Assembly (NCBI GenBank): GCA_002269645.1
Contig: NIVC01000562.1
Span: forward strand, 124,001-188,000
Direction: 5' to 3'
Source of the DNA: Macrostomum lignano
Taxonomy: Eukaryota
Length of the DNA stretch: 64,000 nt
How positions within the stretch are numbered: the stretch's first letter is position 1; the number at the start of each line of letters is the position of its first letter. The position numbers were made by a program, and so were the translations under genes. A model generated the notes under the pieces. It ran no database searches. It had not been told where the DNA came from and saw only the letters and a list, made by a program, of their open reading frames with translations. Shown piece by piece: positions 9,701 to 62,874 of this stretch.

Positions 9701-12700
9701 TGTTGAAGGCTACAATAACAAGCTGTTTGTAAGTGATTCGTGTTGAAGGCTACAATAACAAGCTGTTTGTAAGTGATTCGTGTTGAAGGCTACAATGACA
9801 AGCTGTTTGTAAGTGATTCGTGTTGAAGGCTACAATAACAAGCTGTTTGTAAGTGATTCGTGTTGAAGGCTACAATAACAAGCTGTTTGTAAGTGATTCG
9901 TGTTGAAGGCTACAATGACAAGCTGTTTGTAAGTGATTCGTGTTGAAGGCTACAATAACAAGCTGTTTGTAAGTGATTCGTGTTGAAGGCTACAATGACA
10001 AGCTGTTTGTAAGTGATTCGTGTTGAAGGCTACAATGACAAGCTGTTTGTAAGTGATTCGTGTTGAAGGCTACAATAACAAGCTGTTTGTAAGTGATTCG
10101 TGTTGAAGGCTACAATAACAAGCTGTTTGTAAGTGATTCGTGTTGAAGGCTACAATGACAAGCTGTTTGTAAGTGATTCGTGTTGAAGGCTACAATGACA
10201 AGCTGTTTGTAAGTGATTCGTGTTGAAGGCTACAATGACAAGCTGTTTGTAAGTGATTCGTGTTGAAGGCTACAATGACAAGCTGTTTGTAAGTGATTCG
10301 TGTTGAAGGCTACAATACAAGCTGTTTGTAAGTGATTCGTGTTGAAGGCTACAATGACAAGCTGTTTGTAAGTGATTCGTGTTGAAGGCTACAATGACAA
10401 GCTGTTTGTAAGTGATTCGTGTTGAAGGCTACAATGACAAGCTGTTTGTAAGTGATTCGTGTTGAAGGCTACAATAACAAGCTGTTTGTAAGTGATTCGT
10501 GTTGAAGGCTACAATGAGAAGCTGTAATTGGAATGCACTGGTTGGAATGCACTGGTTGGAATGAAACTGTATTGCAGCATGTATTTCTGAAGCAGCATGA
10601 ATAGAAGGCCTGCAGCTGTTTACCTTTCCAATTCCACTAAATTAAAGAGCTGTTTAAATGTATTCTCCACTGTTTAACTGTGGGGCCTCATGCATATGCA
10701 ATTCCCGTGCCATGTGCTACCTTATGCCTGCTATTAAGACTTTTTCGTTGCTTTCACTGTTTGTTGCTAGCCAAGCGAGCATACAAACTATTTTGTCATA
10801 GTTACTAGTATAAGGAACGCAAGCCAAAATCAGTTAGACTTAGAAATATCATTAGTAAGTTTTCGTTTGTCATTGTTATTACTGCTATATTTTTATTTAG
10901 TTACTAAATGTACTATATATAGTCCTTTTGTGAGGCCGCTACTGTCAACTCCGGTTCTTCGCCGACTCATTTCAGAATCTCTATGCGACCATCGGGCGAA
11001 AGCTGAAGCAATTTGGCGAGATGCTCAGCTTGATGGATCAGCGGCTTAACTTTGGATTAGCCAAAGAGGAGGTGCGAAAGATGATGGTGAATTCGCTGCT
11101 TACTCCAGCCCGGCTTATAGCGTAAGTTTTATGAAACCCAATATACTCGGTGCTGTAGTGAATTGGCGGTGTAGTGAATTGGCGGTGTAGTGAATTTACG
11201 GTGTAGTGAATTGGTGATGTAGTGAATTGGTGATGTAGTGAATTGGTGATGTAGTGAATTGGTGATGTAGTGAATTGGTGATGTAGTGAATTGGCGATGT
11301 AGTGAATTGGTGATGTAGTGAATTGGTGATGTAGTGAATTGGCGATGTAGTGAATTGGTGATGTAGTGAATTGGTGATGTAGTGAATTGGCGATGTAGTG
11401 AATTGGTGATGTAGTGAATTGGTGATGTAGTGAATTGGCGATGTAGTGAATTGGTGATGTAGTGAATTGGTGATGTAGTGAATTGGTGATGTAGTAAATT
11501 GGTGATGTAGTGAATTGGTGATGTAGTGAATTGGCGATGTAGTGAATTGGTGATGTAGTGAATTGGTGATGTAGTGAATTGGCGATGTAGTGAATTGGTG
11601 ATGTAGTGAATTGGTGATGTAGTGAATTGGTGATGTAGTGAATTGGTGATGTAGTGAATTGGTGATGTAGTGAATTGGTGATGTAGTGAATTGGCGGTGT
11701 AATGAATTGGTGATGTAGTGAATTGGCGGTGTAGTGAATTAGCGATGTATTGAATTGGCGATGTAGTGAATTGGTGATGTAGTGAATTGGCGATGTAGTG
11801 AATTGGTGATGTAGTGAATTGGTGATGTAGTGAATTGGTGATGTAGTGAATTGGCGGTGTAGTGAATTGGTGATGTAGTGAATTGGCGGTGTAGTGAATT
11901 GGCGATGTAGTGAATTGGTGATGTAGTGAATTGGCGGTGTAGTGAATTGGTGATGTAGTGAATTGGCGGTGTAGTGAATTGGTGATGTAGTGAATTGGTG
12001 ATGTAGTGAATTGGTGATGTAGTGAATTTTTGATGTAGTGAATTGGCGGTGTAGTGAATTGGTGATGTAGTGAATTGGCGGTGTAGTGAATTGGTGATGT
12101 AGTGAATTGGCGGTGTAGTGAATTGGCGGTGTAGTGAATTGGTGATGTAGTGAATTGGTGATGTAGTGAATTGGCGATGTAGTGAATTGGCGATGTAGTG
12201 AATTGGTGATGTAGTGAATTGGCGATGTAGTGAATTGGTGATGTAGTGAATTGGCGGTGTAGTGAATTGGCGATGTAGTGAATTGGTGATGTAGTGAATT
12301 GGTGATGTAGTGAATTGGTGATGTAGTGAATTGGTGATGTAGTGAATTGGCGGTGTAGTGAATTGGTGATGTAGTGAATTGGCGGTGTAGTGAATTAGCG
12401 ATGTAGTGAATTGGCGATGTAGTGAATTGGTGATGTAGTGAATTGGTGATGTAGTGAATTGGCGATGTAGTGAATTGGTGATGTAGTAAATTGGCGGTGT
12501 AGTGAATTGGTGATTTAGTGAATTGGCGGTGTAGTGAATTGGCGATGTAGTGAATTGGTGATGTAGTGAATTGGTGATGTAGTGAATTGGCGGTGTAGTG
12601 AATTGGTGATTTAGTGAATTGGCGGTGTAGTGAATTGGTGATGTAGTGAATTGGTGATGTAGTGAATTTGTGATGTAGTGAATTGGCGGTGTAGTGAATT

Positions 12701-15700
12701 GGTGATGTAGTGAATTGGTGATGTAGTGAATTGGCGGTGTAGTGAATTGGTGATGTAGTGAATTGGTGATGTAGTGAATTGGCGGTGTAGTGAATTGGCG
12801 ATGTAGTGAATTGGCGGTGTAGTGAATTGGTGATGTAGTGAATTTTTGATGTAGTGAATTGGCGGTGTAGTGAATTGGTGATGTAGTGAATTGGCGGTGT
12901 AGTGAATTGGCGATGTAGTGAATTGGCGATGTAGTGAATTGGCGGTGTAGTGAATTTGCGGTGTAGTGAATTGGCGATGTAGGGAATTGGCGGTGTGGAG
13001 AAGTGGCACCGGTGAGAAAGGGCACCGGTGAGAAATGGCACCAGAGAGAGATGGCACCGGAGAGAAATGGCAACGGAGAGGATTGGCACCGGAGAGAAAG
13101 GGCACCAGAGAGAATTGGCACCGGAGAGAAATGGCACCAGGGAGAAATGGCACCGGTGAGAAAGGGCACCGGTGAGAAAGGGGACCAGAGAGAAAGGGGA
13201 CCAGAGAGAAATGGCACCAGAGAGAAAGGGCACCAGAGAGAAATGGCACCGGTGAGAAAGGGCACCAGAGAGAAATGGCACCAGAGAGAAAGGGCACCAG
13301 AGAGAAATGGCACCGGTGAGAAAGGGCACCAGAGAGAAATGGCACCAGAGAGAAAGGGCACCAGAGAGAAATGGCACCGGTGAGAAAGGGCGTCGGACTG
13401 ATAGGACGCCAGGGGTAAAGTTCTCTTCAAGGAAAGGGCAGCAAGACCTTGCAGAATTTCAGCAATCAGCAAGCTTAAATAAAGCGACTTGCGATTTGAT
13501 TCCAATAGCTTATGGCTAATTGTATGTTGTTGGGCGGGGCTGCTGGCCCAGCTTGATTGCTGTGTCAGTGGAATTAGACCAACCGTTGCCAATAAACTCA
13601 ACTGAAGTAGAAGAGCTAAGAAATTGTGCATTTGTGAGTGTATCGTTCTGCTGTTTTTTGCCTCTGTTGGACCCAGTTCTGCTTAATAGTTAATCAAAAA
13701 TACCTATTTTTGGCTCAGGATGTATATATTTAATGGCTTCGGCAATAAGTAGCATAAAAATGTTGTTCACTTGAGTCGCATCTAACTACTGCAAGTAGCC
13801 TAAACTGAGCGTGTGTGTTTTTCTTGTACTTTTCCATTTCCCAGCGAGATGCGGCTGTACCTGTTGGAACGGGATCGCTACCTGCGCAACGATCAGCTGG
13901 CCTGCCTGGAGTCGCTAACCCTGGCCCAAGTTGGCCAGTTTCACAAGCGGCTGCTATCAAAGCTATCTATTAAAGTCTACGTGCATGGCAACCATGGACC
14001 CGAGGTGGGTTAATGAATAAATGCTTGTGATAGATTTGTCAAGCCATGTGTTTTTTGGTACATACTGGCAAATACAGGTGTTTTTGTCCTATCCACATCA
14101 GGCGTATTTACTAACCACATCAGGTATATTCAGTCAGCCATAACGGGTATATTTAATCAGCTAAAACGGCAATATTAATTATTAATTAGCCACATCAGGT
14201 ATATTAATCGGCCACATCAGGTATATTAATCAGCCACATCAGGTATATTAATCAGCCACATCAGGTATATTAATCAGCCACATCAGGTATATTAATCAGC
14301 CACATCAGGTATATTAATTAGCCAAATCAGGTATATTAATCAGCCACATCAGGTATATTAATCAGCCACATCAGGTATATTAATCAGCCACAATGGTATA
14401 TTAATCAGCCACATCAGGTATATTAATCAGCCACAATGGTATATTAATCAGCCACATCAGGTATATTAATCAGCCACAATGCCATGGTATATTAATCAGC
14501 CACATCAGGTATATTAATCAGCCACAATGGTATATTAATCAGCCACAATGGTATATTAATCAGCCACAATGGTATATTAATCAGCCACAATGGTATATTA
14601 ATCAGCCACATCAGGTATATTAATCAGCCACAATGGTATATTAATCAGCCACATCAGGTATATTAATCAGCCACAATGGTATACTAATCAGCCACAATGG
14701 TATATTAATCAGCCACATCAGGTATATTAATCAGCCACAATGGTATATTAATCAGCCACAATGGTATATTAATCAGCCACAATGGTATATTAATCAGCCA
14801 CATCAGGTATATTCAACCAGCCACATCAGGTATATTAATCAGCCACAATGGTATATTAATCAGCCACATCAGGTATATTAATCAGCCACAATGGTATATT
14901 AATCAGCCACAATGGTATATTAATCAGCCACAATGGTATATTAATCAGCCACATCAGGTATATTAATCAGCCACAATGGTATATTAATCAGCCACAATGG
15001 TATATTAATCAGCCACAATGGTATATTAATCAGCCACAATGGTATATTAATCAGCCACAATGGTATATTAATCAGCCACATCAGGTATATTAATCAGCCA
15101 CAATGGTATATTAATCAGCCACAATGGTATATTAATCAGCCACAATGGTATATTAATCAGCCACATCAGGTATATTCAACCAGCCACATCAATTATACTG
15201 AATTGGCCACAAGTAAATTTAATTAGCACAGCACGTATGCATAATTAGTTAGCCACAACAGGTATATATAATGAGCACACCATTTTTATTGAATTAGCCA
15301 CTCCATAGCTCAATATGCACTGGATTATTTGTTTGATTTTCCCACTCTGTGTGTTATGATCGGCTTAGAAGAGCTTTCCTTATAATTATTTCCCTGCTGA
15401 CAGGACGCAAAGAACTACTTTCGTTATATTGTGTCCGTCCTGGATCCCGGCTGCGAAGTTGCCAACTGCCAGGTGAGAGAGTACAGTTACTACTTGGTAA
15501 TTTATTTTTGAAGAAAAGTGTCAATATTGATTTTCTATCAGCTGTCATCAGTTAGGCATTTAAAAACAATAACAAAATACACCTCGCTCCGGTCACGAGT
15601 GGCCACAGAGGGGGGGAGGTATCAGAGCGCACGCCTTTGTGGCCGCACTCCTGAAAAAGTAGCATATTTAAAAAAGAAATCAAAAGAACATACCGCATAC

Positions 15701-18700
15701 CTACATGAAAATATTATGCTAATTATGCTATGTCATAAGTTTTGCAGTACTGTCGCTAATCAAATTGAGTAGCAAATTTCATGCAGAGATTTTAATACAC
15801 TTTTCGTCTATTCTACTGCAAGTAGGATTTCAGAGTGTGACTTAAAAATTATTCTCTCAGCCAAACAAATCTACAAAGCTCTGTGTGATGCGGTACAGTA
15901 CATATATACATAATATTAGAATACATATGCGATCTTCATATAGAGGCATGGCGTGCAAAATTTGCTTAAAGTATTCGTAACAAGATTATTAAATGAGGGC
16001 TCAAAAGTCAGCAGAATGGGCAGAATTGCCGTCAGCGCTGGTGTGTGGGATGATGTCGCCGAAGGCGTTGCGTCAGGGTGCCCGCAGCCCTTTCAGGTAA
16101 AAAATGTCTTAGCAATTTCTAATCAATAGTCAGCCCTAACGTAACTCTGTTTCTGGCTGCATGGGTACTGGGATGATTTGACCATAGACAATCGACTCGG
16201 ACAATCAAACTGAGATCGGCACCATAGATCTCGGCCTCGGCTTGATTGTCTATAGTCTATGGCCAAGCCACCCAGACAACAGATACTTAGCCCTGAATTG
16301 CATACGAAGCATACAATTTGCTTGAATAACAAATCTCATTTTGAGTGTCAGTACGCTCGTAAAAGTTTCAATGATCAACGAATGCCATCTTCAAAGTAGC
16401 CGATGCGCTAGGCCAGCGTTCCGCGCTCCCTGTACCAGCTGACCAGCACAGCCGCGGCCACAATGCAGCTGGGCAGGCAGACCAGTAGGCTAACAGCAGC
16501 TGAGCCAACTAGCATAGCAACGCATTGCCTGTGCGAGCCGACCTGGGCTAGGAAACTGGCCAATACGAATGCCAGGCCGGTGGCCAGCACCAGGCTGTGC
16601 GCTGCGCACGCGCCCAGCTGTAGACGGGCATTGAGAAACAGTCGGCCGCTTAGGCAGCTCAGGGCCACGCTTAGTCCGGCGGTCAGGGCGCTGCTTGCGC
16701 ACGTAGCGAAACCCAGGCCTGCGTGTGGGAGGGATGGAATGGGGAAATTTAGGCCTATCTCTGGTTGTAGGCTGCTTGTGGGCACCCTAGCGCAATGCCT
16801 TCGGCGACACTGTCCCACAACCAGCGCTGAGGTAATTCTGCCCATCCCACTTACAATGACTCTTGAGCACATAAAAGCCCCCCCCCATAGTGGTTAGGGG
16901 TTGTAGCCTAGTGGTTAGAGCGTCGGACTCACGACTTGAAGGTCGGTGGTTCGATTCCCGATCCCACTGGAACAATTTGTGCCCTTGAGCAAGACACTTA
17001 GCTCTCCATTGCATCAGTTCATTCAGCTGTAAAATAATTTCCAGCATTAGCTGGGGTAATTGAGGGTGTGTGGCGACCCCCCAGTCCTTGGACTGAACAG
17101 CCGTACGCAGCCTTCAGATGCGCCGCGCAATAGCTGCGGCTGAGCTGTGGTTGCACATCTGGCCCAATCGAGGAAGAAGGTGTAATCAAAAAAGGCGCGC
17201 CAATACTGTACGCCGACACGCACTCATACACACGCTCACAGGCTGTACAGAGGCCCTGATTTTCTAAACGTCAGGCATGTACGCTCTCTGTGCCTTTGGG
17301 GGGTTGGCCTTCATGGTTGTAAATAGGACGACAACCCCAAAACTTCGTGCACAGAAGCCCCAAATGAATGTTTGCGCACGGAATCGAACCAGGGGTCCTA
17401 GCGCGTGAGTCGATCGCGTTTTTACCGCTGAGCTGCCTTCTAGATACTATGGATTAATATTTGATGGATGGGATCTGGGATCGAAAAAAATTGAAGAATT
17501 GAAGAAATTAGGATTCGGATTAGATATCATATTCTGAACTATACATAGGCATATGAAATTGAGATATTTAGATGCTGGTGACGGTATCTGATATACGAGC
17601 GTATGCTTTGTATTATTGTCATATTGTTATAGAAATTCGGTTTAAAAATAAATCATAATTAATTTCTGCAACTGCTTTTCTTCCGGTCACTGTCGGTGCA
17701 ACATGTGGATTATCTAAATCCTACGGAGGGTGGCAAGTCAGGACGGTGCCGTCTCACCTGAGCATTCTAACATTCTCCTTTAAGATTGACATTAACGGTT
17801 GTTATTCGCGCAGCTAAACTCCTGGGATTCGAGCCCGGGTCCTCTAATACCGCTCTGGCGCTCTAACAAATTAGCCCTTCGACGCCAATTTGAAATTGCA
17901 TTTCCGTGTTTAAGTTGGCTTTGTGGTAGGGGGTAAATTTTTCCTTACATTTTGGTGACTTGCTTCTGTCTGTCGCTTCAACAGGCGGCAGTCGGCATGG
18001 AAAAGGGAGGGGCGGGTGGAGGCAGCAACCCGAAGGTTTGACACTTTTTGTGAACTCTTTTATAAACTTTTATAAACATCTTGGTTGTTAGGCCCGTCTG
18101 CACTTTAAGTCCAGTCCGTCAGTTGTTAGGAGGGAACACGACTTTTTCTTAAAATGTAGCTTGGAATATTTTCCTACTGCAAAAGCATAGAGAAGCACCG
18201 CGGCTGCAGCACAGGGGCATAATGGGATTCTTAGGCAGTGCGGAAAGTTGCGGGGGGCGAAAACTATTGAGAGCGAGTGGCTTCGCATAATGGAATTTGA
18301 GGAAACTATAATATAGAAAAATAATACTGGCCTCGTGCGGCTTCTAAAGTTATTAGGACCTATTTTTAATTCTACTCCGCATAATTATTCAGTCTATTAG
18401 TTATAATAAAAGTCTGAAAGTATGAATAAAGCTTTGTCCCCCCCCTCCCGGGGTGTGTTAACTCAGGCCCGCGATGGACAGTTAATGGGATTTTTCTCAA
18501 ACCCTTCCGATCCAACGCTTGAATGCTTACAGTCGCAGCGTTGCCGAATTCTAATTCGCTTACGCTACGCTCGATTGCGCGCTATGCAATTCCTCTTTCC
18601 TAGACTCCCGCGCCAGCCCCTGGCAAGGCCACGCAGCCTCATTTTGGCACTATCAGACCTGGCCGTGATTTCCAACTCAACTCCGGCTCAGCTTCTGTAC

Positions 18701-21700
18701 TCCTTCAGCTGTTATTCATTTCATAAGCCTAGCTATTTGGCTACCGAAAAAGTGCTTGCAAAAGGTTTTGCGCTTAGCCGTCAGAGTAAAAAATCCTGAA
18801 CTTTTCAGTCAGGTCACCGATACTCTCCAGATCATTCACTGGGTCACTGATACTCACCAAATGCTTTACTGGGTCACTGATACTCCCCAGATCCTTCATT
18901 GGGTCACTGATACTCTCCAGATCATTTACTGGGTCACTGATACTGTCCAGATTATTCACTGGGTCACTGATACTGTCCAGATCATTTACTGGGTCACTGA
19001 TACTGTCCAGATTATTCACTGGGTCACTGATACTGTCCAGATCATTCACTGGGTCACTGATACTGTCCAGATTATTCACTGGGTCACTGATACTGTCCAG
19101 ATCATTGACTGGGTCACTGATACTGTCCAGATTATTCACTGGGTCACTGATACTGTCCAGATCAGTCACTGGGTCACTGATACTCCCCAGATCCTTCATT
19201 GGGTCACTGATACTGTCCGGATCATTCACTGGGTCACTGATACTCTCCAGATCATTTACTGGGTCACTGATACTGTCCGGATCATTCACTGGGTCTCTGA
19301 TACTCTACAGATCATTCACTGGGTCACTGATACTCACCAGATGCTTTACTGGGTCACTGATACTCCCCAGATCCTTCATTGGGTCACTGATACTGTCCGG
19401 ATCATTCACTGGGTCTCTGATACTCTCCAGATCATTCACTGGGTCACTGATCCTCTCCAGATCATTTACTGGGTCACTGATACTGTCCGGATCAGTCACT
19501 GGGTCACTGATACTGTCCAGATCAGTCACTGGGTCACTGATACTCTCAAAATCATTTAATGGGTCACTGATACTGTCTGGATCATTCACTGGGTCCTGAT
19601 ACTGTCCAGATCAGTCACTGGGTCACTGATACTGTCCGGATCAGTCACTGGGTCACTGATACTCTCCAAATCATTTAATGGGTCACTGATACTGTCTGGA
19701 TCATTTACTGGGTCACTGATACTGACCAGATCAGTCACTGGGTCACTGATACTCCCCAGATCCTTCATCGGGTCACTAATACTATCCGGATCATTCACTG
19801 GGTCACTGCTACTGTCCAGATCAGTCACTGGGTCACTGATACTCCCCAGATCCTTCATCGGGTCACTAATACTATCCGGATCATTCACTGGGTCACTGCT
19901 ACTCCCCAAATCCTTCATTAGGTCACTAATACTATCCGGATCATTCACTGGGTCACTGATACTCCCCAGATCTTTCAGTGTGTCACAACTATTTCCTATT
20001 CAAAACGAACGACATCAGACCGATTAGTTAACAAAAGTAAAGACGCCTACAGATTAAGAGTGCATTGCTCTCATCAGCCGTTGGTCAGACAAAGCAAGTT
20101 TTGTATGCTGCCTGGATGCTGTCCGTTGCCTCACGGCTGACCGGCTGTGAATGCTAGGCTAGGCTACTCAATTTAGTATATTAGCCAATTTACTCGAACC
20201 GGACATGCTCGGCCTGCTCTGCTTCCCCTGCCATCTCTCATATAAGAAAGCATTGCTTGACGAAGTGTGCGCTCGTAGGGGCTATTTATCTTACTAACTG
20301 CAACTGCTGTCTGGCTCTCCTTTGTAGCTTTCGTTTCTATCTTTACGGATTCCTATAGGATGCTTGCTGCTTGCATAGAGACAAACCGAGACCAGATTCT
20401 CAATTCTCAATCGATTCTAACTAATAGGTGGTGTGGGGGCTGCTGCGCAATATTGTGCTAAAGTAGAGAGTAGAGTTTTTTAGACTTCAAAGGCGGTGGT
20501 TCTAGTTGAAATGATTAGCGAGTCTCAATTGCTGAAATCTAGTTAATCGGTTCGATTACTTACCGTGGGGTTTCCCAGTCCTCATCTAATGCAAATATAC
20601 TTTCTAGTGCGTATAAGTTGGTTGGATCTAGCTCGTACAGTATTAATTATGAATATTAAATCAACGTCGGATCGGGGAATGGAGCAGAATTCTTAAGTAT
20701 TTCCCATTCTTTATTTCCTTTCTACAGTGTAATGCGATTTGGGCCCACATTAGCAGTGTGGTCGCTACTAGTTGCTACCAACCAACCATTTTTTTTCATA
20801 GCGCTTGGGATTCGTTTTAACTCTTGATGTAAATTTTGGGCAGGCGAGTATAGCTTGGCATATACTACTATATATTATCGAATGATATTTGCGTGTCTCC
20901 TTGAACATAGCTACGAGTATAAATAAGTAGTATCAATATTCGTTTTCTCACGAATAAAATATCCGAAAATTGTAGCCAAATATGAGCACCGCTAATGGCT
21001 AATGGCTTGCTGGGGACAAAAAGATTGAAGGCTGTATTAGATATTTTGCTATAGAATGCGAAATATGCTTGATGGATGCTTGCTTGTCAACAAATTTGGT
21101 TAACCAGTGCTCCATTTTAATGAGCTCAAGGTCTTCTGTTGGACTTCATTTAATGGCTACGAAGGAAGGCATTTGGCTATGAGGGAAGACATTTGGCTAC
21201 AGAGCAAGGCATTTTGCTACAGAGGAAGGCATTTTGCTACGAAGGAAGACATATGGCTATGAAGGAAGACATTTGGCTATGATGGAAGACATTTGGCTAT
21301 GAAGGAAGACATTTGGCTATGAAGGAAGACATTTGGCTATGAGGGAAGGCATTTGGCTATAATGGAAGACATTTGGCTATAATGGAAGACATTTGGCTAT
21401 GAGGGAAGGCATTTGGCTATGATGGAAGACATTTGGCTATGAAAGAAGACATTTGGCTATGAAGGAAGACATTTGGCTATGAGGGAAGGCATTTGGCTAT
21501 AATGGAAGACATTTGGCTATAATGGAAGACATTTGGCTATGAGGGAAGGCATTTGGCTATGATGGAAGACATTTGGCTATGAAGGAAGACATTTGGCTAT
21601 GAGGGAAGGCATTTGGCTATAATGGAAGACATTTGGCTATGAAGGAAAGCATTTGGCTATAAAGGAAGACATTTGGCTATGAAGGAAAGCATTTGGCTAC

Positions 21701-24700
21701 GAAGGAAGACACCTGGCCTTGAATGAAGTAGTTTTAAAGGTTCTCGAATGTCCCTTAAACCTGGTCCATCTTAGTAATTTTGTAGGACGAAAAATTAAGG
21801 GCATTTTGTAGAATTGTTTCTTAAAACAGATTTTTCTATTAAATCGTACAAGAATGTGTTCTCAATTCGAAGCAATCGCTGTCCTTCACTCACCCGTGAC
21901 GCTGGTGCATGAATTGGCAGCGAAAACCGCATCGGCCGTGGCAGCCATGGCGCCGTGCATCAGCACGCCAATAGCGCTGCCTATCAGCTTCCGCTTGTCC
22001 GATAGCACTTTCTCCTCGCGTCCGTCGCCTCCTACTGTGCTCATGTTGGTCTGCATCTTTCTTGTTGGGGGTACAAACGGCATGACTGTTTGCTGTTGCA
22101 CTGTTTGTGCTGTGTCGTTTTGATTATGAAAGATTTTTTCGGTTGAAATTAACTACAACGCTGTATAATGGTTACTGCAGTATCCATGTATATTCAGACT
22201 AACTCACTAGCTAGCTATCTAGCGAGTTAGCAAGGAGTTCTATTGGCTAACGGATCTGTTGTCCAATTGTGCAGAGTTATCCTCGGTCTGGACTCTGGAT
22301 TGTCAGGAACTCCTATGCGGAGAGTTAAACTATCGTTGAAAAATGAGCTTTTTTAAAATTCTAGGAGAAGAAGCTGAGAGAAGATTGAAATTAGGCATCT
22401 CTTCTCTTTTTGCGCTATTTCCAGATTGATGAGTCCACTAGCTATCACTTTTGCTGGATTGCCAAATTTTATTTCTCTCTCCGTGATTGATTAGCTACGT
22501 AAATATGCGCCCAGAACCAAGGAACTCCTAATATAAAATCTGGAGTAGCGGATTCTATCTTGAGTCTCATTTCTTTGCAATAAACGGTTGCTAGTTGTTT
22601 TATACTATTTAATAGCTCGTAAAAAGCAGTAAATTTGCTACGAAGGAAGACATTTGGCTATGGAGAGAGACATCGGCTATAAAGGAATAGTTTTGGCTAT
22701 GATGGAAGACATTTGGCTATAATGGAAGACATATGGCTATGAAAGAAGACATATGGCTATGAAAGAAGACATTTGGCTATGAAGGAAGACATTTGGCTAT
22801 GATGGAAGACATTTGGCTATGATGGAAGACATTTGGCTATGATGGAAGACATTTGGCTATAATGGAAGACATATGGCTATGAAAGAAGACATATGGCTAT
22901 GAAAGAAGACATTTGGCTATGAAGGAAGACATTTGGCTATGATGGAAGACATTTGGCTATGATGGAAGACATTTGGCTATAATGGAAGACATATGGCTAT
23001 GAAAGAAGACATATGGCTATGAAAGAAGACATTTGGCTATGAAGGAAGACATTTGGTTATGATGGAAGACATTTGGCTATGATGGAAGACATTTGGCTAT
23101 AATGGAAGACATATGGCTATGAAAGAAGACATATGGCTATGAAAGAAGACATGGCTATGAAAGAAGACATTTGGCTATGAAGGAAGACATTTGGCTATGA
23201 TGGAAGACATTTGGCTATGAAAGAAGACATTTGGCTATGAAGGAAGACATTTGGCTATGATGGAAGACATATGGCTATGAAGAGAGACATCGGCTATGAA
23301 GGAATACTTTTGGCTATGATGGAAGACATTTGGCTATGGGGGAAGACATTTGGCTATAATGGAAGACATTTGGCTATGAAGGAAGACTTTTGGAAGTTTT
23401 TTGCTAAATAAAAAGTGGTTTTCAACGCCAGATTTCTAGACAGAGATCTCCATGAACCACTCCTTTTTGATTAACAGCTATCAATACCTATCGTGTACTC
23501 CATGATATCCCCGCCTTTCCCGCAGAACACGTGCGCCACTCTGCCGCCGGGCCGCTGCGGCGTCTGCGTTGAGAATCTCAAATCTGGCGACGTGAATAGC
23601 GCATTGTTGGAGTATTTTCAGTTCGAATTCCCGCCAACTCTACGCGACTACGTGATCTCGAATCTGCTGCTGGTTTGTGCAATAGCCTTTACGTTTCTTA
23701 ATTGCTTTTAAGTTTACTTTTTATGGGAACTTGGATGGCAGGTGTTTTAGTTTTTAGGTCTCCCTATAGAACCCCACAGATACCTCATTAGAGTACACCC
23801 AGAGATACCTAACTAGAGTACCTTCAACTGTACCTCACTAGAGTACCCCCAGAGATACCTAACTAGAGTACCTTTAACTGTACCTCACTAGAGTACCCCC
23901 AGAGATACCTAACTAGAGTACCTTCAACTGTACCTCACTAGAGTACCCCCAGAGATCCCTCCCCCAGAGATACCTTACTAAAGGACCCCCAGAGATACCT
24001 AACTAGATTACCTTCAGCGGTACCTCACTAGAGTACCCCCAGCGACACCTCACTTCAGTACTTCCGAAAAAGTCTAAATGTACTTTAATTTCCTCCTTTT
24101 AGTCAAATGTACAATTTCCCTGCTGATTGCTCCGCCGCTTAACACATTATACATATTACCCTCGAGTTCGGTCGGGATCCGGATTTAATCATCTTAATCA
24201 GTCAGTATCAGTCAGCTGACTCCCTCTCAATTCCATTCCGTATCCGTATTAAGATTAAGAACCTTTTTATATCCCTTTTTTGTTACTGCTGCGATTCAGT
24301 GGAAGATCCTATTACTAGCCCCGGTTTCAGGTTTCATTCTGTCGCAAATTATGCACGAATCGCCGGCAATGATATGCCATGCTAGCCTAGCTTGTGTGCT
24401 TTCAATCTATCCCGGAACTGTCGCACTGCTAGTGTGCATAGTACTGTGACTGTACATGTATTTGTAAAAGGATTTACCGAAAAGTTATTCATAGAATATG
24501 CCATATTCTAAGAAACCCCACCGCCAGCGCTGCAAGTTAAGCAGAGCAGACCGGAGGGTGGCAAATTAATAAAGGTTGGCTGCCACACCTGCCACATTTC
24601 TTCTATTAATTTCTATATTAGAAAAGCATTAGTTAAAGCAACATTACAGGTTTAGATTCTCTAGCCATTACAAATTTCAAGTACTAGGCAAGGAAAAACT

Positions 24701-27515
24701 GCTTTCTTAGAAAATATTTGAAGACTGACTTTACCAGACAAATGGACTTTTTATAAGGCAGGAGGGTTGTGTGCACCCTGGCCATACATGCGCAACAGTC
24801 GGCCGAGTCGGCCGATTCGGCCGACCGATTTGGCGGCCAACCAAGGAAGTCGCAAAAATACCCACCCAAAAATTTACCTAAGTAGTAGTACTAAGTAGCT
24901 GACGAGGCATTTTGGCTTAATAAGACAGTTATAGTTACTCCTGCCGTTTACCCAAAGTTGCGTTTATTTTGCTTTAGAGTTTTTTGATGTGTAAGTCGCA
25001 TTTTTGGCCAAAAACTACGTCGCATTTTTGTTAAAACTAAGTCGCATGGCCGACCGAATTTTGGAGGTTGCGCATGTATGACCCTGGCGCACTTTAAGCG
25101 ACATTGTCACACAAGCGCGCGGATACGTACGCAGTCATACGCACAGGCACACACTCACACAGGAGTGTACAGCGGCCCTAACTTTATTTATCGTTAGTCA
25201 TGTACACTTCACTGCGCCTTGGGGGTTGGCTCTTAAGGCCGTTAATTGCACGAGCAGAGCCAAGCCGAGATTCCAATTTAGCCCCAAATTAATGTGACTG
25301 CACTTGGAATCGAGCCTGGGTCGCTGGCACATGAGAGGGCCGGTACGGCCACCCCTAAACAGAAAAATACACTACACGGAGATATAAACTTTTTCATTGT
25401 TTTTTCGGCACAAAAATAGCAATAGTTTTTATATAGGAAGCATTTTCGAATGCTCACTTTCTGATTAGACATACCTGTGTAGTTTTTTGCTACTGTAAGT
25501 AGTCAAACAAACAAGTTCCAACCTGCCGACTGGTTTCAGCACATGATGTCCGAGCCGTGCTACGACTATCTGCGCACCAAGCACCAGCTAGGCTACCAAG
25601 TGTACTGCGACAGTCGGCAGACTAACGGCGCCATCGGGTTCATGGTGCAGGTGAACAGCCAGGCGGACCAGTTCAGCATGGCCCAGCTGCAGGCCAGGGT
25701 GGACAAGTTCACTGGCGGTCGCTTTCTCAAGCTATTGACCGGCATGTCGGACGAGGCGTTCTCGAATTACGCCAGGTCTCTTGTCGACCTGCTGCTGGTT
25801 GAGGATGTCGGCATGACTCAGCAGGCTGATCGGTACTGGTGCGCGATACTGGACAATGGCCCGGCCTGTCCGCCTGCCGCTTTTGGACTGCACTACACCG
25901 AGGCTGAGATGCTGCTGCACTCGGTTACTAAGGCTGAGGCCATCGAGTTCTATCAGCGGGCTCTGCGCTCCACTGGCAGGCGGTCATTCACCTTTCAGGT
26001 GAGTTGGGTCATGGTTTAGATCTTTGTAGCTTTTGGTGGAGTGGAGTAGATTTTGGTACATATTATGCTAGAGTAGAGTGCGTCTGGGTGTTTTGGTAGA
26101 GTATAGTAAAATCGGCGATAGATTATGGTAGAGAGGCTTCATCGTCTTTTATATAGTAGAGTAGATTTTGTAGATTATAGCTCGTAATAGAGTAGAGTGG
26201 GTCTTGGTAGGTTTGGTAGAGTAGATTGGATGTTGGTAGGTTTTGGCAGAATGAGTCTGTGTAGATTTTGATACATTAGAGTGAGTCTTGTTTGGTAGAG
26301 TAGAGTGAGTCTGGGTAGATTTTGGTAGAGTAGAGTGAGTTTTGGTAGATTTTGCTAGAGTAGTGAGTATTGGTAGATTTTGTTAGAGTAAATTGACTCT
26401 TAGTAGAGTAGAGTGAGTCTTGGTAGAGTAGAGTGAGTCTTGGTAGAGTAGAGTGAGTCTTGGTGGAATTTGGTAGAGTAGAGTGCGTCTTGGTAGGTTT
26501 GGTAGACTGAATCTGGATATATTTTGGTAGAGTAGATTGAATGTTGATAGGTTTTGGTAGAGTAGATTGAATGTTGATAGGTTTTGGTAGAGTAGATTGA
26601 ATGTTGATAGGTTTTGGTAGAGTAGAGTGTATCTGAGTAGGCTTTAGTAGGGTAGAGTGGAAATGGGTAGATTTTTTTGTAAAGTAAGAGTAGAATGGGT
26701 GTCTGAGTAGATTCGGCAGAGTAGAGAATAGGTTCGAGTTCAGTAGAGCGGGTCAGCTCAAGTTTAAAGGTGTCTAGACTGGCTTTCAATGCTAATAATT
26801 CAATGGCACGAAGTTTGCAGAAACAATTCGTCACTGGAAGGTGCGATGCAAGCAGTCGGTGCTGTTAATAGCTTAGCACCTTTGATCTTTAATTGTCCAG
26901 CTGCGGTTTCTACCTAATACTTTGTATCTAATATACTGGGTGACATCTGCTATAAGCTCGTGCCCATAAACCTGACTCATTTTTATTAGAATATATACTT
27001 ATTACCGACCTGCTGCCAGGTGGCAGCTCACTTTATAAACGGGTCTGACTCTCGTGCCACGACCCCTGGTTAGATTCCGTGTGCAGGCACATTCATTCAC
27101 TTGGGGCTTGTGTGAACGATTAGACAGTCAGGGCCGCTATTCACTCCACGTGAGCGTGTGCATGACTGCGTGCCTGCGTACAGTATTGGCGCGCTTGTGT
27201 GTGCTCAGGAGTCAGTGGAATGGGCAGAATGGCCTCAGCGCCGGTTGTGAGCCGATATCGCCGAAGGCGTTGCACTGGCAGCCCTCCTGCAATAATCACT
27301 ATTCATCCCCCACACTGTTCAAGGCGGAAGGCGCGACCAAGAAAGTGTCCGGCCGGGCTGGCAAGAAGCCATTCGCCATGCCGCTGTGCTACTCAACAGA
27401 CACTGTCGACAGCCAAGCCAAGGACGGCGACGAAGAAGAGTGCATCGTCTGGACTGGAGACCTGCACCAGTTCAAAGCCAGCCTGCAGTACAATGCAGCT
27501 AGGGCGATTGTTTAA
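3..27515 (+). CDS. NRDC: Nardilysin (M16A metallopeptidase), 5'-partial; C-terminal two thirds in 12 exons
   Basis: Exons built by hand with GT-AG and consistent phases: <3-619, 2730-2904, 3671-3761, 3860-3911, 5208-5291, 5388-5457, 10976-11121, 13845-14004, 15404-15472, 23526-23672, 25540-25998, ~27324-27515 (last acceptor AAG, less certain). Motifs HEGPGSVL, FRFQEEDEPADSVE, LHLPLPNQFV, YPVRLL..YKDRKFKTPRA, IRVEGYNDKL, VHGN, EPCYDYLRTKHQLGYQVY and EDVGMTQQADRYW follow the order in nardilysin. PCYDYLRT..LGYQVY and VNSQADQF fit nardilysin better than IDE. The HXXEH site would lie upstream of the window. Confidence 0.88.
624..787 (+). repeat. (TCTG)n microsatellite directly after the nardilysin donor at 620
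   Basis: Near-perfect TCTG run of about 40 units. Confidence 0.97.
2081..2158 (+). mobile_element. SINE family A, tRNA-derived head only
   Basis: TAGCCTAGTTGTTAGAGCGTCGGACTCACGACTTGAAGGTCGGGGGTTCGATTC has A and B boxes and matches the heads at 2238, 16897, 49264 and 57432. Confidence 0.75.
2238..2575 (+). mobile_element. SINE family A (tRNA head, Deu/Nin-like core, ATT-rich tail)
   Basis: A/B boxes, then CCTTGAGCAAGACACTTAACTC..CACCCAGCTGTAAAATGGGT, ending in (TTA/CTA)n; four near-full copies in the window. Confidence 0.85.
3072..3482 (+). repeat. 21-bp minisatellite ATCTCCACTTAGAATCCAGCT
   Basis: About 19 tandem units in the intron 2905-3670. Confidence 0.95.
3945..5162 (+). repeat. 29-bp G-rich minisatellite TGTGGGAGGGTGACGGCATGGTCTGAGAA
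   Basis: About 42 units filling almost the whole intron 3912-5207; source of the minus-strand pseudo-ORFs. Confidence 0.96.
5425..10525 (+). repeat. 40-bp minisatellite made of the last 33 nt of a nardilysin exon plus its 5' splice site
   Basis: Unit ATTCGTGTTGAAGGCTACAATGACAAGCTGTTT|GTAAGTG. The first copy (5425-5464) is the real exon end IRVEGYNDKLF and donor; ~125-128 copies estimated from length. Confidence 0.97.
11150..13390 (+). repeat. Compound 16-bp minisatellite: (GTGATGTAGTGAATTG)n to ~12995, then (GGCACCAGAGAGAAAT-like)n
   Basis: Two unit families share one period and join in phase; the array starts ~28 bp after the donor at 11122. Confidence 0.95.
14095..15190 (+). repeat. 21/22-bp minisatellite GTATATTAATCAGCCACA(ATG/TCAG)
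   Basis: About 50 interspersed units of two length variants. Confidence 0.95.
16408..22083 (-). CDS. Nested antisense two-exon gene; ~166-aa four-transmembrane protein (MS4A/CD20-like topology)
   Basis: Exon 1 is 22083-21894 (ATG CCG TTT...ACG G|GTGAGT, phase 1). Exon 2 is 16718-16408 (CCCCATTCCATCCCTCCCACACGCAG|GC CTG GGT, phase 1, ends TAG). The joined frame is open: MPFVPP...KLIGSAIGVLMHGAMAATADAVFAANSCTSVTGLGFATCASSALTAGLSVALSCLSGRLFLNARLQLGACAAHSLVLATGLAFVLASFLAQVGSHRQCVAMLVGSAAVSLLVCLPSCIVAAAVLVSWYRERGTLA. It has four hydrophobic segments and exon-like GC content. Alternative ATGs lie at 22056 and 22044. Confidence 0.7.
16897..17170 (+). mobile_element. SINE family A copy
   Basis: Same head and core as 2238-2575. 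Confidence 0.85.
17195..17440 (-). mobile_element. SINE family B copy (diverged)
   Basis: Reverse complement has a GGTTCGATTCC B box and the body shared with 49945-50301 and 50325-50620. Confidence 0.7.
17700..17885 (-). mobile_element. Probable third tRNA-derived SINE head
   Basis: Minus strand reads GGCGTCGAAGGGCTAATTTGTTAGAGCGCC..GGGCTCGAATCCCAGG (A/B-box-like); single copy in the window. Confidence 0.4.
18808..19975 (+). repeat. 30-bp minisatellite GGGTCACTGATACTGTCCAGATCATTCACT
   Basis: About 39 units; the 3n period creates pseudo-ORFs on both strands. Confidence 0.96.
21160..21720 (+). repeat. 20-bp minisatellite ATTTGGCTATGAAGGAAGAC, block 1
   Basis: About 28 units; same unit as 22636-23390. 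Confidence 0.95.
22636..23390 (+). repeat. 20-bp minisatellite ATTTGGCTATGAAGGAAGAC, block 2
   Basis: About 37 units with internal higher-order repetition. Confidence 0.95.
23780..24060 (+). repeat. ~50-bp (2x25) degenerate minisatellite AGAGTACCCCCAGAGATACCTAACT/AGAGTACCTTCAACTGTACCTCACT
   Basis: About 5 dimeric units downstream of the donor at 23673. Confidence 0.85.
24748..25353 (-). mobile_element. SINE family B copy interrupted by a hAT MITE
   Basis: Head at ~25353 on the minus strand and tail at ~24748; the body is split at ACCCTGGC, which is uninterrupted in the 43173-43551 copy. Confidence 0.8.
24783..25080. mobile_element. hAT-type MITE, 298 bp
   Basis: 14-bp TIR CATACATGCGCAAC/GTTGCGCATGTATG; 8-bp TSD ACCCTGGC at 24775-24782 and 25081-25088. 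Confidence 0.92.
26020..26760 (+). repeat. Degenerate ~23-29-bp repeat TTTTGGTAGAGTAGA(GTGAGTCT)
   Basis: Decaying tandem array starting just after the donor at 25999. Confidence 0.8.
27085..27285 (+). mobile_element. SINE family B, 3' part
   Basis: CAGGGCCGCT..GTGCTCAGGAGTCAGTGGAATGGGCAGAATGGCC.. is shared with the other B copies. Confidence 0.7.
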
Positions 27516-28611
27516 GCTTCTGGCTAGCGATATTAATACTGGATGGACTACTGTTTTTGTTTTGGCTAAGTTTCTCTTTTAATTGATAATTTAATTGACT
27601 CCTGTTCTGTAGCCCTTGAAATTGTAGGCAGAGGTTGCTTTATAAAGAGAGCCAACCTCTGGCCCTGGTGCGTACTCCCAACTATTATTAATCAGAGCAC
27701 GAACAGGAGTCTATTAAAATGGACTTTTATAATCTGTAGTATAGGCAACGTTAACCAGTCAAAAGACCATGCAATTATGACAATACGAGTATACTGCTGT
27801 ACTTTAACAAGGTTTTTAAAGGATTTAAAAATTTTTAAGCTACCGTGGTCTCTTGACTGGTTTATTACTCGTATACTCCATAAACAGCCTTTAGATTGCC
27901 TTTATTAGGCATTAGAGTACTTTTATTTAAGCCAAGCGTGTGTTTGTTTTAAATTAAACTTTATTGCTTTTTTCAAACCCTTTCTAAGTAATTTACTAAT
28001 TATTTTGGTTGTATACTACTTAATGCGCGCTCAGTCCTACTGCTATCCATTTCTGCGACTTTAACCGACTTTAAGCATCAGGCTTTACTAGTATACACAA
28101 AGCCCAAAGCCTAAAACTGAACTCCATGCGCTACACTGACTGAAGCACAAACTAAGCAGATAAATCAATTTTTAGGAGTTTTACTTTTTTGCTCATTTTT
28201 TTCTGCCGAAAACTTGTTTAAAGATATTTCAATTGCTTATTTATTTCTTTTTTATCTAGTAGGCATTAGAAAATTGTTTCAGTAGCCGAAATCTATTGTC
28301 TTCTTTCACTTGCTCTATTCTCTCCCTCTTCTCTACCTCTATCTCTCTCCCTCTCTTATCTACCTTTACCTCTCCCCATCTTCACTCTGACTCTCTCCCT
28401 CTCCATCTCCACCACAGCTTCTCCCTCTTCACCTCTTCTTATCCTCCTTCCCCTTCTGCCCTCTTTCTCTACCTCCCACTCACCTCTCACCCTCTTCTTC
28501 CTTTCACTTTGCATCTGTGAACTGTAAGCGCATGTTTATACTGATTTGTGAGAACATTTGAAACATACTAACTATTCTACACCTCTGCCTCTTCCGCGTG
28601 CCCATTTTCAG

Positions 28612-28680
28612 GCGACAGCAGTGGGATACCGCAAGTCGGCTACCGCTGAAGAGTTGCCTCGCAACGGGCAGCAGCAGCGG

Positions 28681-28712
<32 letters not shown>

Positions 28713-31700
28713 ACAGCAGCAAAACGGTACCAGTTCCGGCGGAGCTGCAGTGAGCAACGGCCTGGGGCTGCACCGTCAGCAGCAGCCGGGCCAGTCGGCT
28801 GGCCGGGCGCCTCGCTCCAACAAGCCGCCGGCGCCGCGGCCTCCGCCCCGCCAATCAGCGCCAACTTCGCCTCAGCAGCCGCAGCCTCAGCCGCCGCCGA
28901 CTCCGCCTCGGCCGTCAGCTACGCCGACACACGTCGCCACCAGCAATGGCGCCGCTTCGCTGCAATTATCGCAGCAAAAAAAGCAACAATTAGAAGAGCA
29001 GAAGCTGCTTTTGCAGCAGCAATATTTAGAGCATCTGCGCAAGCGTCAAGAGCAGCAACAACAGCAACAGCAGCAGCAGGAAGAGCGGCAATCAGAATTG
29101 CCCGGTCAGCCACAACGAGGCCAGGCTGTCCGCCAGACCGGCCGGTCCCGCCTTCAGGTGAAGCGCTGCGAGGTGAACGAGAAAATTCACCGCGAGCTGC
29201 AGCTGACCAAAGGCGCTGAGAACATGCTGAGGGTGACGCGAGACAAACAGGCCAAGGCGCAAATTTCTGTTGAATTGAAATACGCCTATTCTAATCTGGA
29301 CCTGCTTCAGCGGGAACTCGCCGACATCAACGAGGCGCTGGAGGTGTACCAGGACACCAGCGCCTGTTTGCCTATGATCCCGCTGGGCTTGAAGGAGACT
29401 CGGCCGCTGGACTATGAGCCTGCGCTGGCCGACTTCATCGAGGAGCACTACAGCGCCAGGCGGGACGACTATCGGCACTGCTTTGTTGAGCTCAACCGCC
29501 TGCGAGAGGCCGCGCGCAGGCCGCTGCGCTCCGAGCAGGGCGTGGCGGACATCTTTGTCTACTTGAATCACCTGTGGTAAGTTGGCCGCTTCAGCTGACT
29601 GCTTGTAGCTGATTAACTCGCTCATGAATTAATCATTTGTAAACTCATTAACTCATAACCTCACTCATGAACTCACTCATAAACTCATGAGCTCACCCAT
29701 GAGCTCACTCATAAATTCGCTCATGAACTCGCTTATGAACTCATGAACTCATTTACTCAACCTTGAACTTGGTCATAAACCCACTCCTGAACTCACTCAT
29801 GAACTCATGAACTCAACCTTGAACTTGGTCATAAACCCACTCATGAACTCACTCATGAACTCATGAACTCAACCTTGACAACAACAACAACAACAACAAC
29901 AAAATACGCGACCCCGCATGCACAGTCACAGTTAGAGCAGGGCGCGTCAGATGGCGCGCCGCAGAGCCTGGGAGCGAACAAAGTCCGCTTCGTTGGCAGT
30001 GTCGGGCGCCCCAGCGTTGCACAGCAGGCAGTCCACGTATCGACGGGTTCGGGCCCGACCCTGCCTGAACGGACCCTGCAAGGTGAGCAGCAGGACGTCC
30101 TGAACAGGTTGGGGGCAGTAGCCCTCGGCCCGGATCACGTGGCCCGCCAGTTGAAGTCGCCGCCGGCGCAGGATGGTGGACGAACCTTGAACCTTGAACT
30201 CACTCATAAACTCCTGAACTCGTAAACTTGTGAACTCAGTTAGGAATTCACTCGCTCATTGAATCAGTCGCTAACTGGCTCTCTCACCCAGGTACCTGGA
30301 CCGCAGGTTCTTCGCCCCGTGGCGCTCGCACAGCCTATTCTTCCACTGGTTCGACTCGTTCACCGGTGTGGCCTTCACCCAGCGCAGCTTGGCATTCGAG
30401 AAGGCCTGCATGGCCTACAATTTGGCGGCCGTATGCAGCCAGCTGGCGCTCTCGTCGGCCCGTCAGCAGCCGGAGGCGGCGCTAAAATGGCTGCTGCGCA
30501 GCTGGGGCGCAATCCTGTTCGTGGCGGAGAACTACACAAATGCGCCCAGTATGGATATGAAGTCGGCCGTACTGGAGATGACTGCAAACCTGTTGAGAGC
30601 GCAAGCCTACGAGTGTCAATATCAATTGGACTATCAGCAGCAGCAGCAGCCTTGTGAGTGCTTGAATAAGTCGTTTTCTTAGAAATGCATTTTTATCACC
30701 CCACCTTTTTATTACTCCCCAAATGGTATCTCAGCAACTCCCCATTGAGCCATGGCATCTCAGCAACTCCCCATTGAGCCATGGTATCTCAGCAACTCCC
30801 CATTGAGCCATGGCATCTCAGCAACTCACCAATCGAGCCATGGCATCTCAGCAACTCCCCATTGAGCCATGGCATCTCAGCAACTCCCCATTGAGCCATG
30901 GCATCTCAGCAACTCACCAATCGAGCCATGGCATCTCAGCAACTCACCAATCGAGCCATGGTATCTCAGCAACTCCCCATTGAGCCATGGCATCTCAGCA
31001 ACTCCCCATTGAGCCATGGCATCTCAGCAACTCCCCATTGAGCCATGGCATCTCAGCAACTCACCAATCGAGCCATGGTATCTCAGCAACTCCCCATTGA
31101 GCCATGGTATCTCAGCAACTCCCCATTGAGCCATGGCATCTCAGCAACTCCCCATTGAGCCATGGTATCTCAGCAACTCCCCATTGAGCCATGGCATCTC
31201 AGCAACTCCCCATTGAGCCATGGTATCTCAGCAACTCCCCATTGAGCCATGGTATCTCAGCAACTCCCCATTGAGCCATGGCATCTCAGCAACTCACCAA
31301 TCGAGCCATGGTATCTCAGCAACTCCCCATTGAGCCATGGCATCTCAGCAACTCCCCATTGAGCCATGGCATCTCAGCAACCCACCATTGAGCCATGGCA
31401 TCTCAGCAACTCAGTTGCTCCAACTAGTGACCTCAAATGACCCCAAATAATTTACCTGCATTAACCTACAGCCCAGCAGCCGCAGTCAAAGCCGAATTCA
31501 ATCCAGGGCCTGGCCGAGTTCTACCTGGTCCGGGCTCAGGCCGCCGAGTTTATCAGCGACGTATTCAACAATGTCGACACTCGACTGTCCGGCGACATTC
31601 TGCGCTACTCGGACTTCATACCGGACACCTGGCTGACTCTGGTACAGCTCAAAACCAACTATTTCAAAGGACTGGCCCGACTCGCCTTGGCCAACTTCAT

Positions 31701-31841
31701 GGTGGACGCCCTGGCCTTGTCCGGGACGGCCGTTCCAGTGGCCGAGGTTGTCACCAGGCTGACCGAAGTCCTGCTGGCCAGGAATTCTAGGAAACCCACC
31801 ACCTCCGGCGAGCTGCGGGCCTTTGGTTAGTTACCTGCTAC

Positions 31842-31898
<57 letters not shown>

Positions 31899-31949
31899 GT
31901 CTGTCTGCCCGTCTGTCTGTCTGTATGTCTATCTGTCTGTCTGTCTGCC

Positions 31950-32017
<68 letters not shown>

Positions 32018-45588: not shown

Positions 45589-62874
<17,286 letters not shown>

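Follow-up and report, generated by a model that had tools for sequence, protein, structure and literature searches.

The stretch analysed here, hereafter the window, comprises 64,000 nucleotides (nt) of Macrostomum lignano DNA (contig NIVC01000562.1 of assembly GCA_002269645.1, positions 124,001 to 188,000 of the forward strand), and the subject of this report is a small two-exon gene predicted on its minus strand inside an intron of a peptidase gene of the plus strand. The host intron is about 8 kb long and is flanked by M16 peptidase exons on both sides; in Pfam the flanking plus-strand exons are assigned to Peptidase_M16_M, Peptidase_M16_C and PqqF-like_C_4. Judged from its sequence the host gene is an M16 peptidase of the nardilysin/insulysin type, and the segment HMMSEPCYDYLRTK of its product is presumably one that resembles human NRDC. 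The elements of the host intron and of the nested gene, with its transmembrane helices numbered TM1 to TM4, are the following (a slash within a sequence marks the splice point).

15404..15472 (+): host M16 exon 5' of the host intron, DAKNYFRYIVSVLDPGCEVANCQ, ending in CAG/GTGAGA
15473-23525 (+): host intron
23526..23672 (+), end approximate: host M16 exon 3' of the host intron, NTCATLPPGRC...ISNLLL, with acceptor CCCGCAG/AAC and donor GTTTGT
22083-22081 (-): start codon ATG of the nested gene, opening exon 1
21894..22083 (-): exon 1 of the nested gene, 190 nt, encoding the N-terminal cytoplasmic tail, TM1 and, as far as the first base of Gly64, the first outer loop
21888..21893 (-): splice donor GTGAGT of the nested gene, exon 1 ending in the context GTCACGG/GTGAGT at 21894/21893
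16719..21893 (-): intron of the nested gene, 5,175 nt
16719..16745 (-): polypyrimidine tract and CAG acceptor of the nested gene, TCCCCATTCCATCCCTCCCACACGCAG
16408..16718 (-): exon 2 of the nested gene, 311 nt including TAG, encoding TM2, TM3, TM4 and the C-terminal WYRERGTLA
16410-16408 (-): stop codon TAG of the nested gene, ending exon 2

The two coding blocks add up to 190 + 311 = 501 nt with the junction in phase 1 (G/GC = Gly64), and the predicted product has 166 amino acids (aa), MPFVPPTRKMQTNMSTVGGDGREEKVLSDKRKLIGSAIGVLMHGAMAATADAVFAANSCTSVTGLGFATC...WYRERGTLA, the N-terminal tail of which (residues 1-32) has DKRKL as its last letters. In a preliminary description of this DNA two minus-strand open reading frames (ORFs) had been joined in phase 1 by a GTGAGT donor and a pyrimidine-CAG acceptor, giving a 166-aa product located in the intron 15473-23525. 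These elements are exact in the sequence, GT-AG boundaries lie exactly at the ends of that intron, and the nested coding sequence (CDS; 16408-22083 (-)) is wholly inside it. Both nested exons form local peaks of GC content (0.58-0.64, the surrounding intron having about 0.40), the GC content at third codon positions of the nested CDS is 0.70 as against 0.66-0.81 for neighbouring exons, and a codon-usage model trained on the M16, rhophilin-like and KCNH exons nearby gives a log-likelihood of +30 bits for the proposed frame and values below zero for each of the five others. Further copies of either nested exon were not found within the window. Two other readings of exon 2 were rejected. The first 51 codons of the unspliced 154-aa ORF at 16408-16872 come from an interspersed repeat together with the acceptor tract, and nothing in the homologues corresponds to them. 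Against the 144-aa ORF on the opposite strand (16463-16897 (+)) stand codon-usage scores and homology.

Homologues were sought with HMMER by searching exhaustively through 1.84 billion representative proteins, and four matches (P0001-P0004) were obtained. The best of them, P0001 (UniRef100_A0A1I8G810), is a protein of M. lignano with 141 aa, matched at E 3e-23 over query residues 1-165 against 1-140 with 49% identity. Taken singly, exon 1 aligns with residues 1-60 of P0001 at E 4e-18 (49% identity) and exon 2 with residues 59-140 at E 2e-20. Both exons thus match collinear adjacent parts of one protein, which was predicted independently in the same species and has the two blocks connected in the order proposed here. 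The two proteins have in common the MPF start, the REEKV-x-DKRKL tail before TM1, the C-terminal LP-x-CI-AAA-x-L-x-W-x-R-x-RG and the order of helices. P0001 differs in being encoded at another locus than the window gene and in missing 12 residues around the splice junction (SVTGLGFATCAS) as well as 12 residues of the TM2-TM3 loop (FLNARLQLGACA), each absence being either real or an error of the gene model. Both segments occur in the window protein and in the distant homologue P0004, and their retention in these two suggests mis-spliced exon boundaries in the P0001 model. The automatic name of P0001, 'G_PROTEIN_RECEP_F1_2 domain-containing protein', is given to it without a Pfam 7tm match and seems to stem from a profile matching spuriously a protein rich in transmembrane segments. 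P0002 (2,240 aa), a translated tandem repeat, was rejected as a homologue, and so was P0003, which is repetitive and looks soluble; both matches are driven by repeats or composition. Residues 1-28 of the window protein (22083-22000 (-)) are about 50% identical to the unit of the P0002 tandem repeat, LPFSPPTQIIQYNPTTVSGIRRQAVVLS, and this likeness was judged to be due to chance or inflated by the repeat.

The distant homologue, P0004, comes from the 15-kb contig ctg121051l (locus L001, 35% GC) of ENA ERZ25070786. The contig bears fragments of mariner-type elements and of retroelements without long terminal repeats, and for this reason L001 is regarded as metazoan DNA. The ORF at L001:3008-3424 aligns unbroken to window residues 36-162 (tblastn E 5e-11, about 27% identity); its frame is open from an acceptor at about L001:3007 (IWVSGICVMLHGLMTVGADTVIMKNRCARIYGFGWAAG...) and runs straight through the window splice point, with RIYGFGWAAG standing opposite SVTG/LGFATC. 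Among the sequence data this uninterrupted frame is the strongest available support for the proposed splice junction. AATAAA is present about 65 nt past the stop of the L001 ORF. The four-helix layout, the short loops and the residues S36, V40, G44, A50, D51, C59, R89, C129-x-A-M, P146, W158 and R162 are common to the two proteins, the difference being that the L001 gene has no intron at the window junction and has its own intron earlier, before TM1. A search of L001 for an N-terminal exon gave nothing convincing, and no M16 exons were found in the 13 kb available, so the L001 homologue is not nested in an M16 gene there. A profile search of 5.8 billion 90% clusters returned P0001 and P0004 and no more family members, and none were obtained from a search seeded with the distant homologue or from a scan of JGI metagenome contigs. 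On these comparisons it is very likely that the locus is a genuine protein-coding gene of an orphan family, of which three members were found.

Hydropathy of the 166-aa protein defines hydrophobic segments at about 33-56, 65-87, 96-122 and 127-157, separated by loops of roughly 8, 12 and 8 residues. The four hydrophobic helices of the preliminary description were thereby recovered, for Kyte-Doolittle windows show four segments and each of two AlphaFold2 models contains four long helices (pLDDT, the predicted local distance difference test, 69.8 from the single sequence and 60.2 from the 3-sequence alignment). Eleven of the 12 Lys and Arg residues of tails and loops fall in the N-terminal tail, the TM2-TM3 loop and the C-terminal tail, and 1 of 12 in the other two loops; since this distribution fits the positive-inside rule, both termini are predicted to be cytoplasmic. 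The TM3-TM4 loop of about 8 residues, QVGSHRQC, holds a single Cys. In the three-sequence alignment S36, V40, G44, A50, D51, C59, L83, R89, L106, F114, F119, C129, A131, M132, L142, P146, A151, W158 and R162 are invariant, invariance over only three sequences being weak evidence of function. With this topology C59 and C129 would lie one in each outer loop, where a disulfide between the loops is possible, and D51 would be buried in TM1 with H43, which is Asn in the paralogue P0001.

A second genomic copy of the region (L002), 97-98% identical, is found in NIVC01000218.1:43905-68523, reversed, and corresponds to window 14853-36665, with unique sequence 97-99% identical and with indels and differing tandem-repeat lengths. 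The window is thus not the same as the GenBank Mlig_3_7 contig; it may be a different allele or a block that was duplicated, or the neopolyploid genome may have been assembled differently there. The start codon, the whole frame, the GTGAGT donor and the acceptor tract of the nested gene are kept in L002. Between the two CDSs there are 6 substitutions (3 synonymous, and the conservative S105G, T60S and A52V) and 0 indels; the rest of the intron has 41 gap positions. The exact 166-aa protein is absent from a protein collection of about 15 billion sequences, and in the GenBank annotation of L002 the 10 kb that lie on the upstream side of the partial M16 model, and within which both nested exons fall, are free of called genes. 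The suggestion that a hidden antisense gene nested here had probably been missed by ORF-based annotation consequently has support at the level of sequence, since neither the protein collections that were searched nor the gene models of the matching contig include the product.

Several points weigh against a functional nested gene of the proposed structure. It is a prediction from sequence. The annotation of Mlig_3_7 was guided by a transcriptome (PMC5730564), and the lack of a model in it may mean low or restricted expression, which is mild evidence and is tempered by the incomplete model that the host gene, too, has at L002. AATAAA and ATTAAA are absent from the 600 nt 3' of the stop codon, and the gap of P0001 next to the junction may mean that either the P0001 model or the window model is imperfect there. 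The divergence between the window and L002 is 1.2% in exons and 1.7% in the intron, a difference that is not significant (Fisher p 0.58); with copies only about 1.7% diverged the comparison is uninformative, and recent constraint is therefore not demonstrated. Both structure models are of low confidence (pLDDT about 70 and about 60), and the functional proposal given below rests on three sequences and on analogy.

Some of the same observations would be expected of a locus that is not expressed, that is, a decaying duplicate or pseudogene of a P0001-type gene or an intronic remnant which has retained an open frame and is not transcribed or spliced as proposed. The missing model in the transcriptome-guided annotation, the lack of a canonical poly(A) signal near the stop, the repeats directly upstream of the acceptor and an exon divergence not significantly below that of the intron all fit such a history. 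On the other hand, in each of two genomic copies the frame of 166 codons runs unbroken, with its start and its two consensus splice sites and without indels, whereas a dead copy at 49% identity to its paralogue is expected to show stops or frameshifts; codon bias is preserved, and the window protein is more complete than P0001 when set against the L001 homologue. An unexpressed locus is therefore regarded as unlikely, although it is the best placed of the explanations that compete with a genuine coding gene.

The assignment of the product to the MS4A/CD20/TMEM176-type proteins, as a divergent tetraspan sharing their ancestry and acting as a channel regulator or chemoreceptor, had been proposed in the preliminary description and fares worse. 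The likeness is one of gross class: four transmembrane segments, termini that are cytoplasmic (predicted here), small size, and a short first outer loop and inner loop. Four transmembrane segments with cytoplasmic termini are common to many unrelated families and do not discriminate for MS4A. In a comparison of sequence only, K-L-I-G-S-A-I-G-V-L-M-H-G also loosely resembles the start of CD20 TM1, K-T-L-G-A-V-Q-I-M-N-G-L-F-H. In CD20 the TM3-TM4 extracellular loop is long and has an internal disulfide (structures 6VJA and 6Y90); here the second outer loop is only about 8 residues long, and there is one Cys per outer loop as against a disulfide within the second extracellular loop of CD20.

Searches by profile gave the assignment no support. 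Pfam CD20 (PF04103) is unmatched at E<=10 in the window protein, in P0001 and in the extended P0004; no Pfam-A model at all matches the window protein at E<=10, and P0001 and P0004 have sub-threshold, mutually inconsistent Pfam-A matches only. Among PDB sequences neither the single sequence nor the three-member profile matched CD20 or FcεRIβ (MS4A2) at E<=10, while a CD20 query, run on the same set as a positive control, recovered both the CD20 entries and, at 3e-08, FcεRIβ; the human CD20 query was validated at 567 bits against 6VJA. The hhalign probability of the family profile against human CD20 is 0.6%, the sole match being 26 columns that lay TM4 onto CD20 TM1-TM2 and are not collinear. 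With the AlphaFold models Foldseek found nothing in PDB at E<=0.001 and no MS4A chain in the best 50 matches, which are generic four-helix bundles, among them V-ATPase c subunits, LTC4 synthase and ORAI, all with E >0.2; as both models are of low confidence, this lack of an MS4A match counts for little. It was reported by Zuccolo et al. (2010) that invertebrates have no MS4A-like genes, the family being reported from jawed vertebrates only, and that short similarities of transmembrane motifs are found across many unrelated membrane proteins (PMC2826416). As far as its sequence goes, the earlier MS4A motif amounts to a short transmembrane similarity of the kind cautioned against there, and at the level of these sequence searches the nested protein has no detectable relationship to MS4A/CD20, which leaves shared ancestry with that family very improbable.

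That the two frames are chance ORFs of GC-rich intronic DNA, with 'helices' that arise artificially from the GC-rich codons of Ala, Leu, Gly and Val, would suit the 63% GC of exon 2, the opposing 144-aa ORF and a protein rich in Ala, Leu, Ser and Gly, but is refuted by the significant collinear homology of both exons to P0001 and to a protein from an AT-rich (35% GC) genome and is disfavoured by a codon-usage score that is positive in the proposed frame only, so its probability is practically negligible.

Outside MS4A, the family may be compared with MAL/MARVEL (PF01284), the V-ATPase proteolipid c subunit and MAPEG/LTC4 synthase, all of which are likewise small (about 150 aa) and consist of four helices joined by short loops. 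The top Foldseek matches were V-ATPase c subunits and LTC4 synthase, none of them significant (E 0.26-1, TM-score 0.35-0.49), and the confidence of the models is too low for the ranks to mean anything. A buried acidic residue is a further likeness to the V-ATPase c subunit, with the difference that it is placed in TM1 here and in TM4 in the c subunit. The Pfam models of MAL/MARVEL, V-ATPase c and MAPEG gave no match at E<=10 for family members.

If the nested gene is a genuine coding gene, its product would be an integral membrane protein with four transmembrane helices, very short loops, both termini in the cytoplasm, an invariant Cys in each outer loop and an invariant Asp in TM1, and would belong to a small orphan family that has no Pfam model and of which three members were found. 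Where so small a protein conserves a buried carboxylate, the residue usually either takes part in a salt bridge between its helix and that of a partner subunit or forms a site for a cation or proton in an oligomer. Of these the former is favoured, and by analogy the role would most likely be that of a small tetraspan accessory or organiser subunit, with the buried acidic residue of TM1 mediating its oligomerisation or its pairing with a partner membrane protein. Such a mode is likened to that of MAL/MARVEL- or MS4A-type tetraspans, to none of which homology is detectable by the tools used. The proposal of an accessory or organiser tetraspan assembling with itself or with another membrane protein is tentative, and its chances are put well below even. 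Bolder, and improbable as it stands, is the idea of a lineage-restricted family of minimal tetraspans (flatworm or wider lophotrochozoan) with a signature of TM1 Asp and outer-loop Cys, whose members would form an ion-conducting oligomer or be obligatory subunits of receptors or channels, and whose expression here would be coupled to the host M16 gene by antisense transcription.

The nested gene is a new member of an uncharacterised family which already has one database entry (A0A1I8G810). For the annotation of M. lignano it adds a missing gene model and closes an ordinary annotation gap; the family, which has no Pfam model and one TrEMBL entry, is then represented in this regeneration model by two or more paralogues and in another metazoan by one relative. 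Expression in a restricted cell type, should it occur, would make the protein a possible convenient marker or a candidate for RNA interference. The finding gives no extension of the MS4A family beyond vertebrates. It can be read rather as a worked example of a short transmembrane-motif resemblance to MS4A that fails profile tests, in agreement with the published cautions on invertebrate 'MS4A-like' sequences.

The host M16 gene (window 27-26019 (+); L002 10001-14619) is modelled only in part in GenBank, as the 212-aa partial protein BOX15_Mlig016776g1 of M. lignano, to which the host exon at 25543-26001 (+) is 100% identical. Host exons upstream of this model, for example 27-~600, 15404-15472 and 23526-~23672, are all left out of it. 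Downstream on the plus strand there is a rhophilin-like gene at 28558-34265 (HR1, BRO1 and PDZ domains by the GenBank model in L002), followed at 51177-58156 by a putative KCNH/EAG-type voltage-gated K+ channel gene that was recognised by eye from exon translations.

Repeats in and around the intron of the nested gene are numerous, and the following were delimited.

18812-19986: 30-mer minisatellite, in the nested-gene intron
21154-21711: 20-mer array, in the nested-gene intron
22633-23393: 20-mer array, in the host intron
16893-17176 (+): tRNA-derived short interspersed nuclear element (SINE), about 280 bp, with further copies in the window at 2238-2517, 49260-49533 and 57436-57698
16777-16878 and 17195-17397 (-): second interspersed repeat family, with related copies near 27061-27276, 33305-33496, 50067-50575 and 16016-16086

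From its sequence the interspersed repeat of about 280 bp looks like a tRNA-derived SINE; its 5' end (16897-16966) scores as tRNA in Rfam with 34.6 bits, and ARAGORN makes no call there. The copy at 16893-17176 sits inside the second interspersed repeat (16777-16878 and 17195-17397), just upstream of the nested-gene acceptor. The translated signature of the second interspersed repeat recurs as spurious ORF starts in several introns, and one copy of it supplies the false ATG of the unspliced ORF 16408-16872. Some minisatellites of the window have a strong GC skew (4-14 kb and 40-42 kb), and the minisatellites give long artefactual ORFs in several frames. With periods of 20-30 nt and longer, minisatellites are very abundant in the window, where they are also present at 3890-5240, 11038-13631 and 59375-61700, and this abundance is consistent with the published content of simple and tandem repeats in the M. 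lignano genome, which is 15% (PMC5730564).

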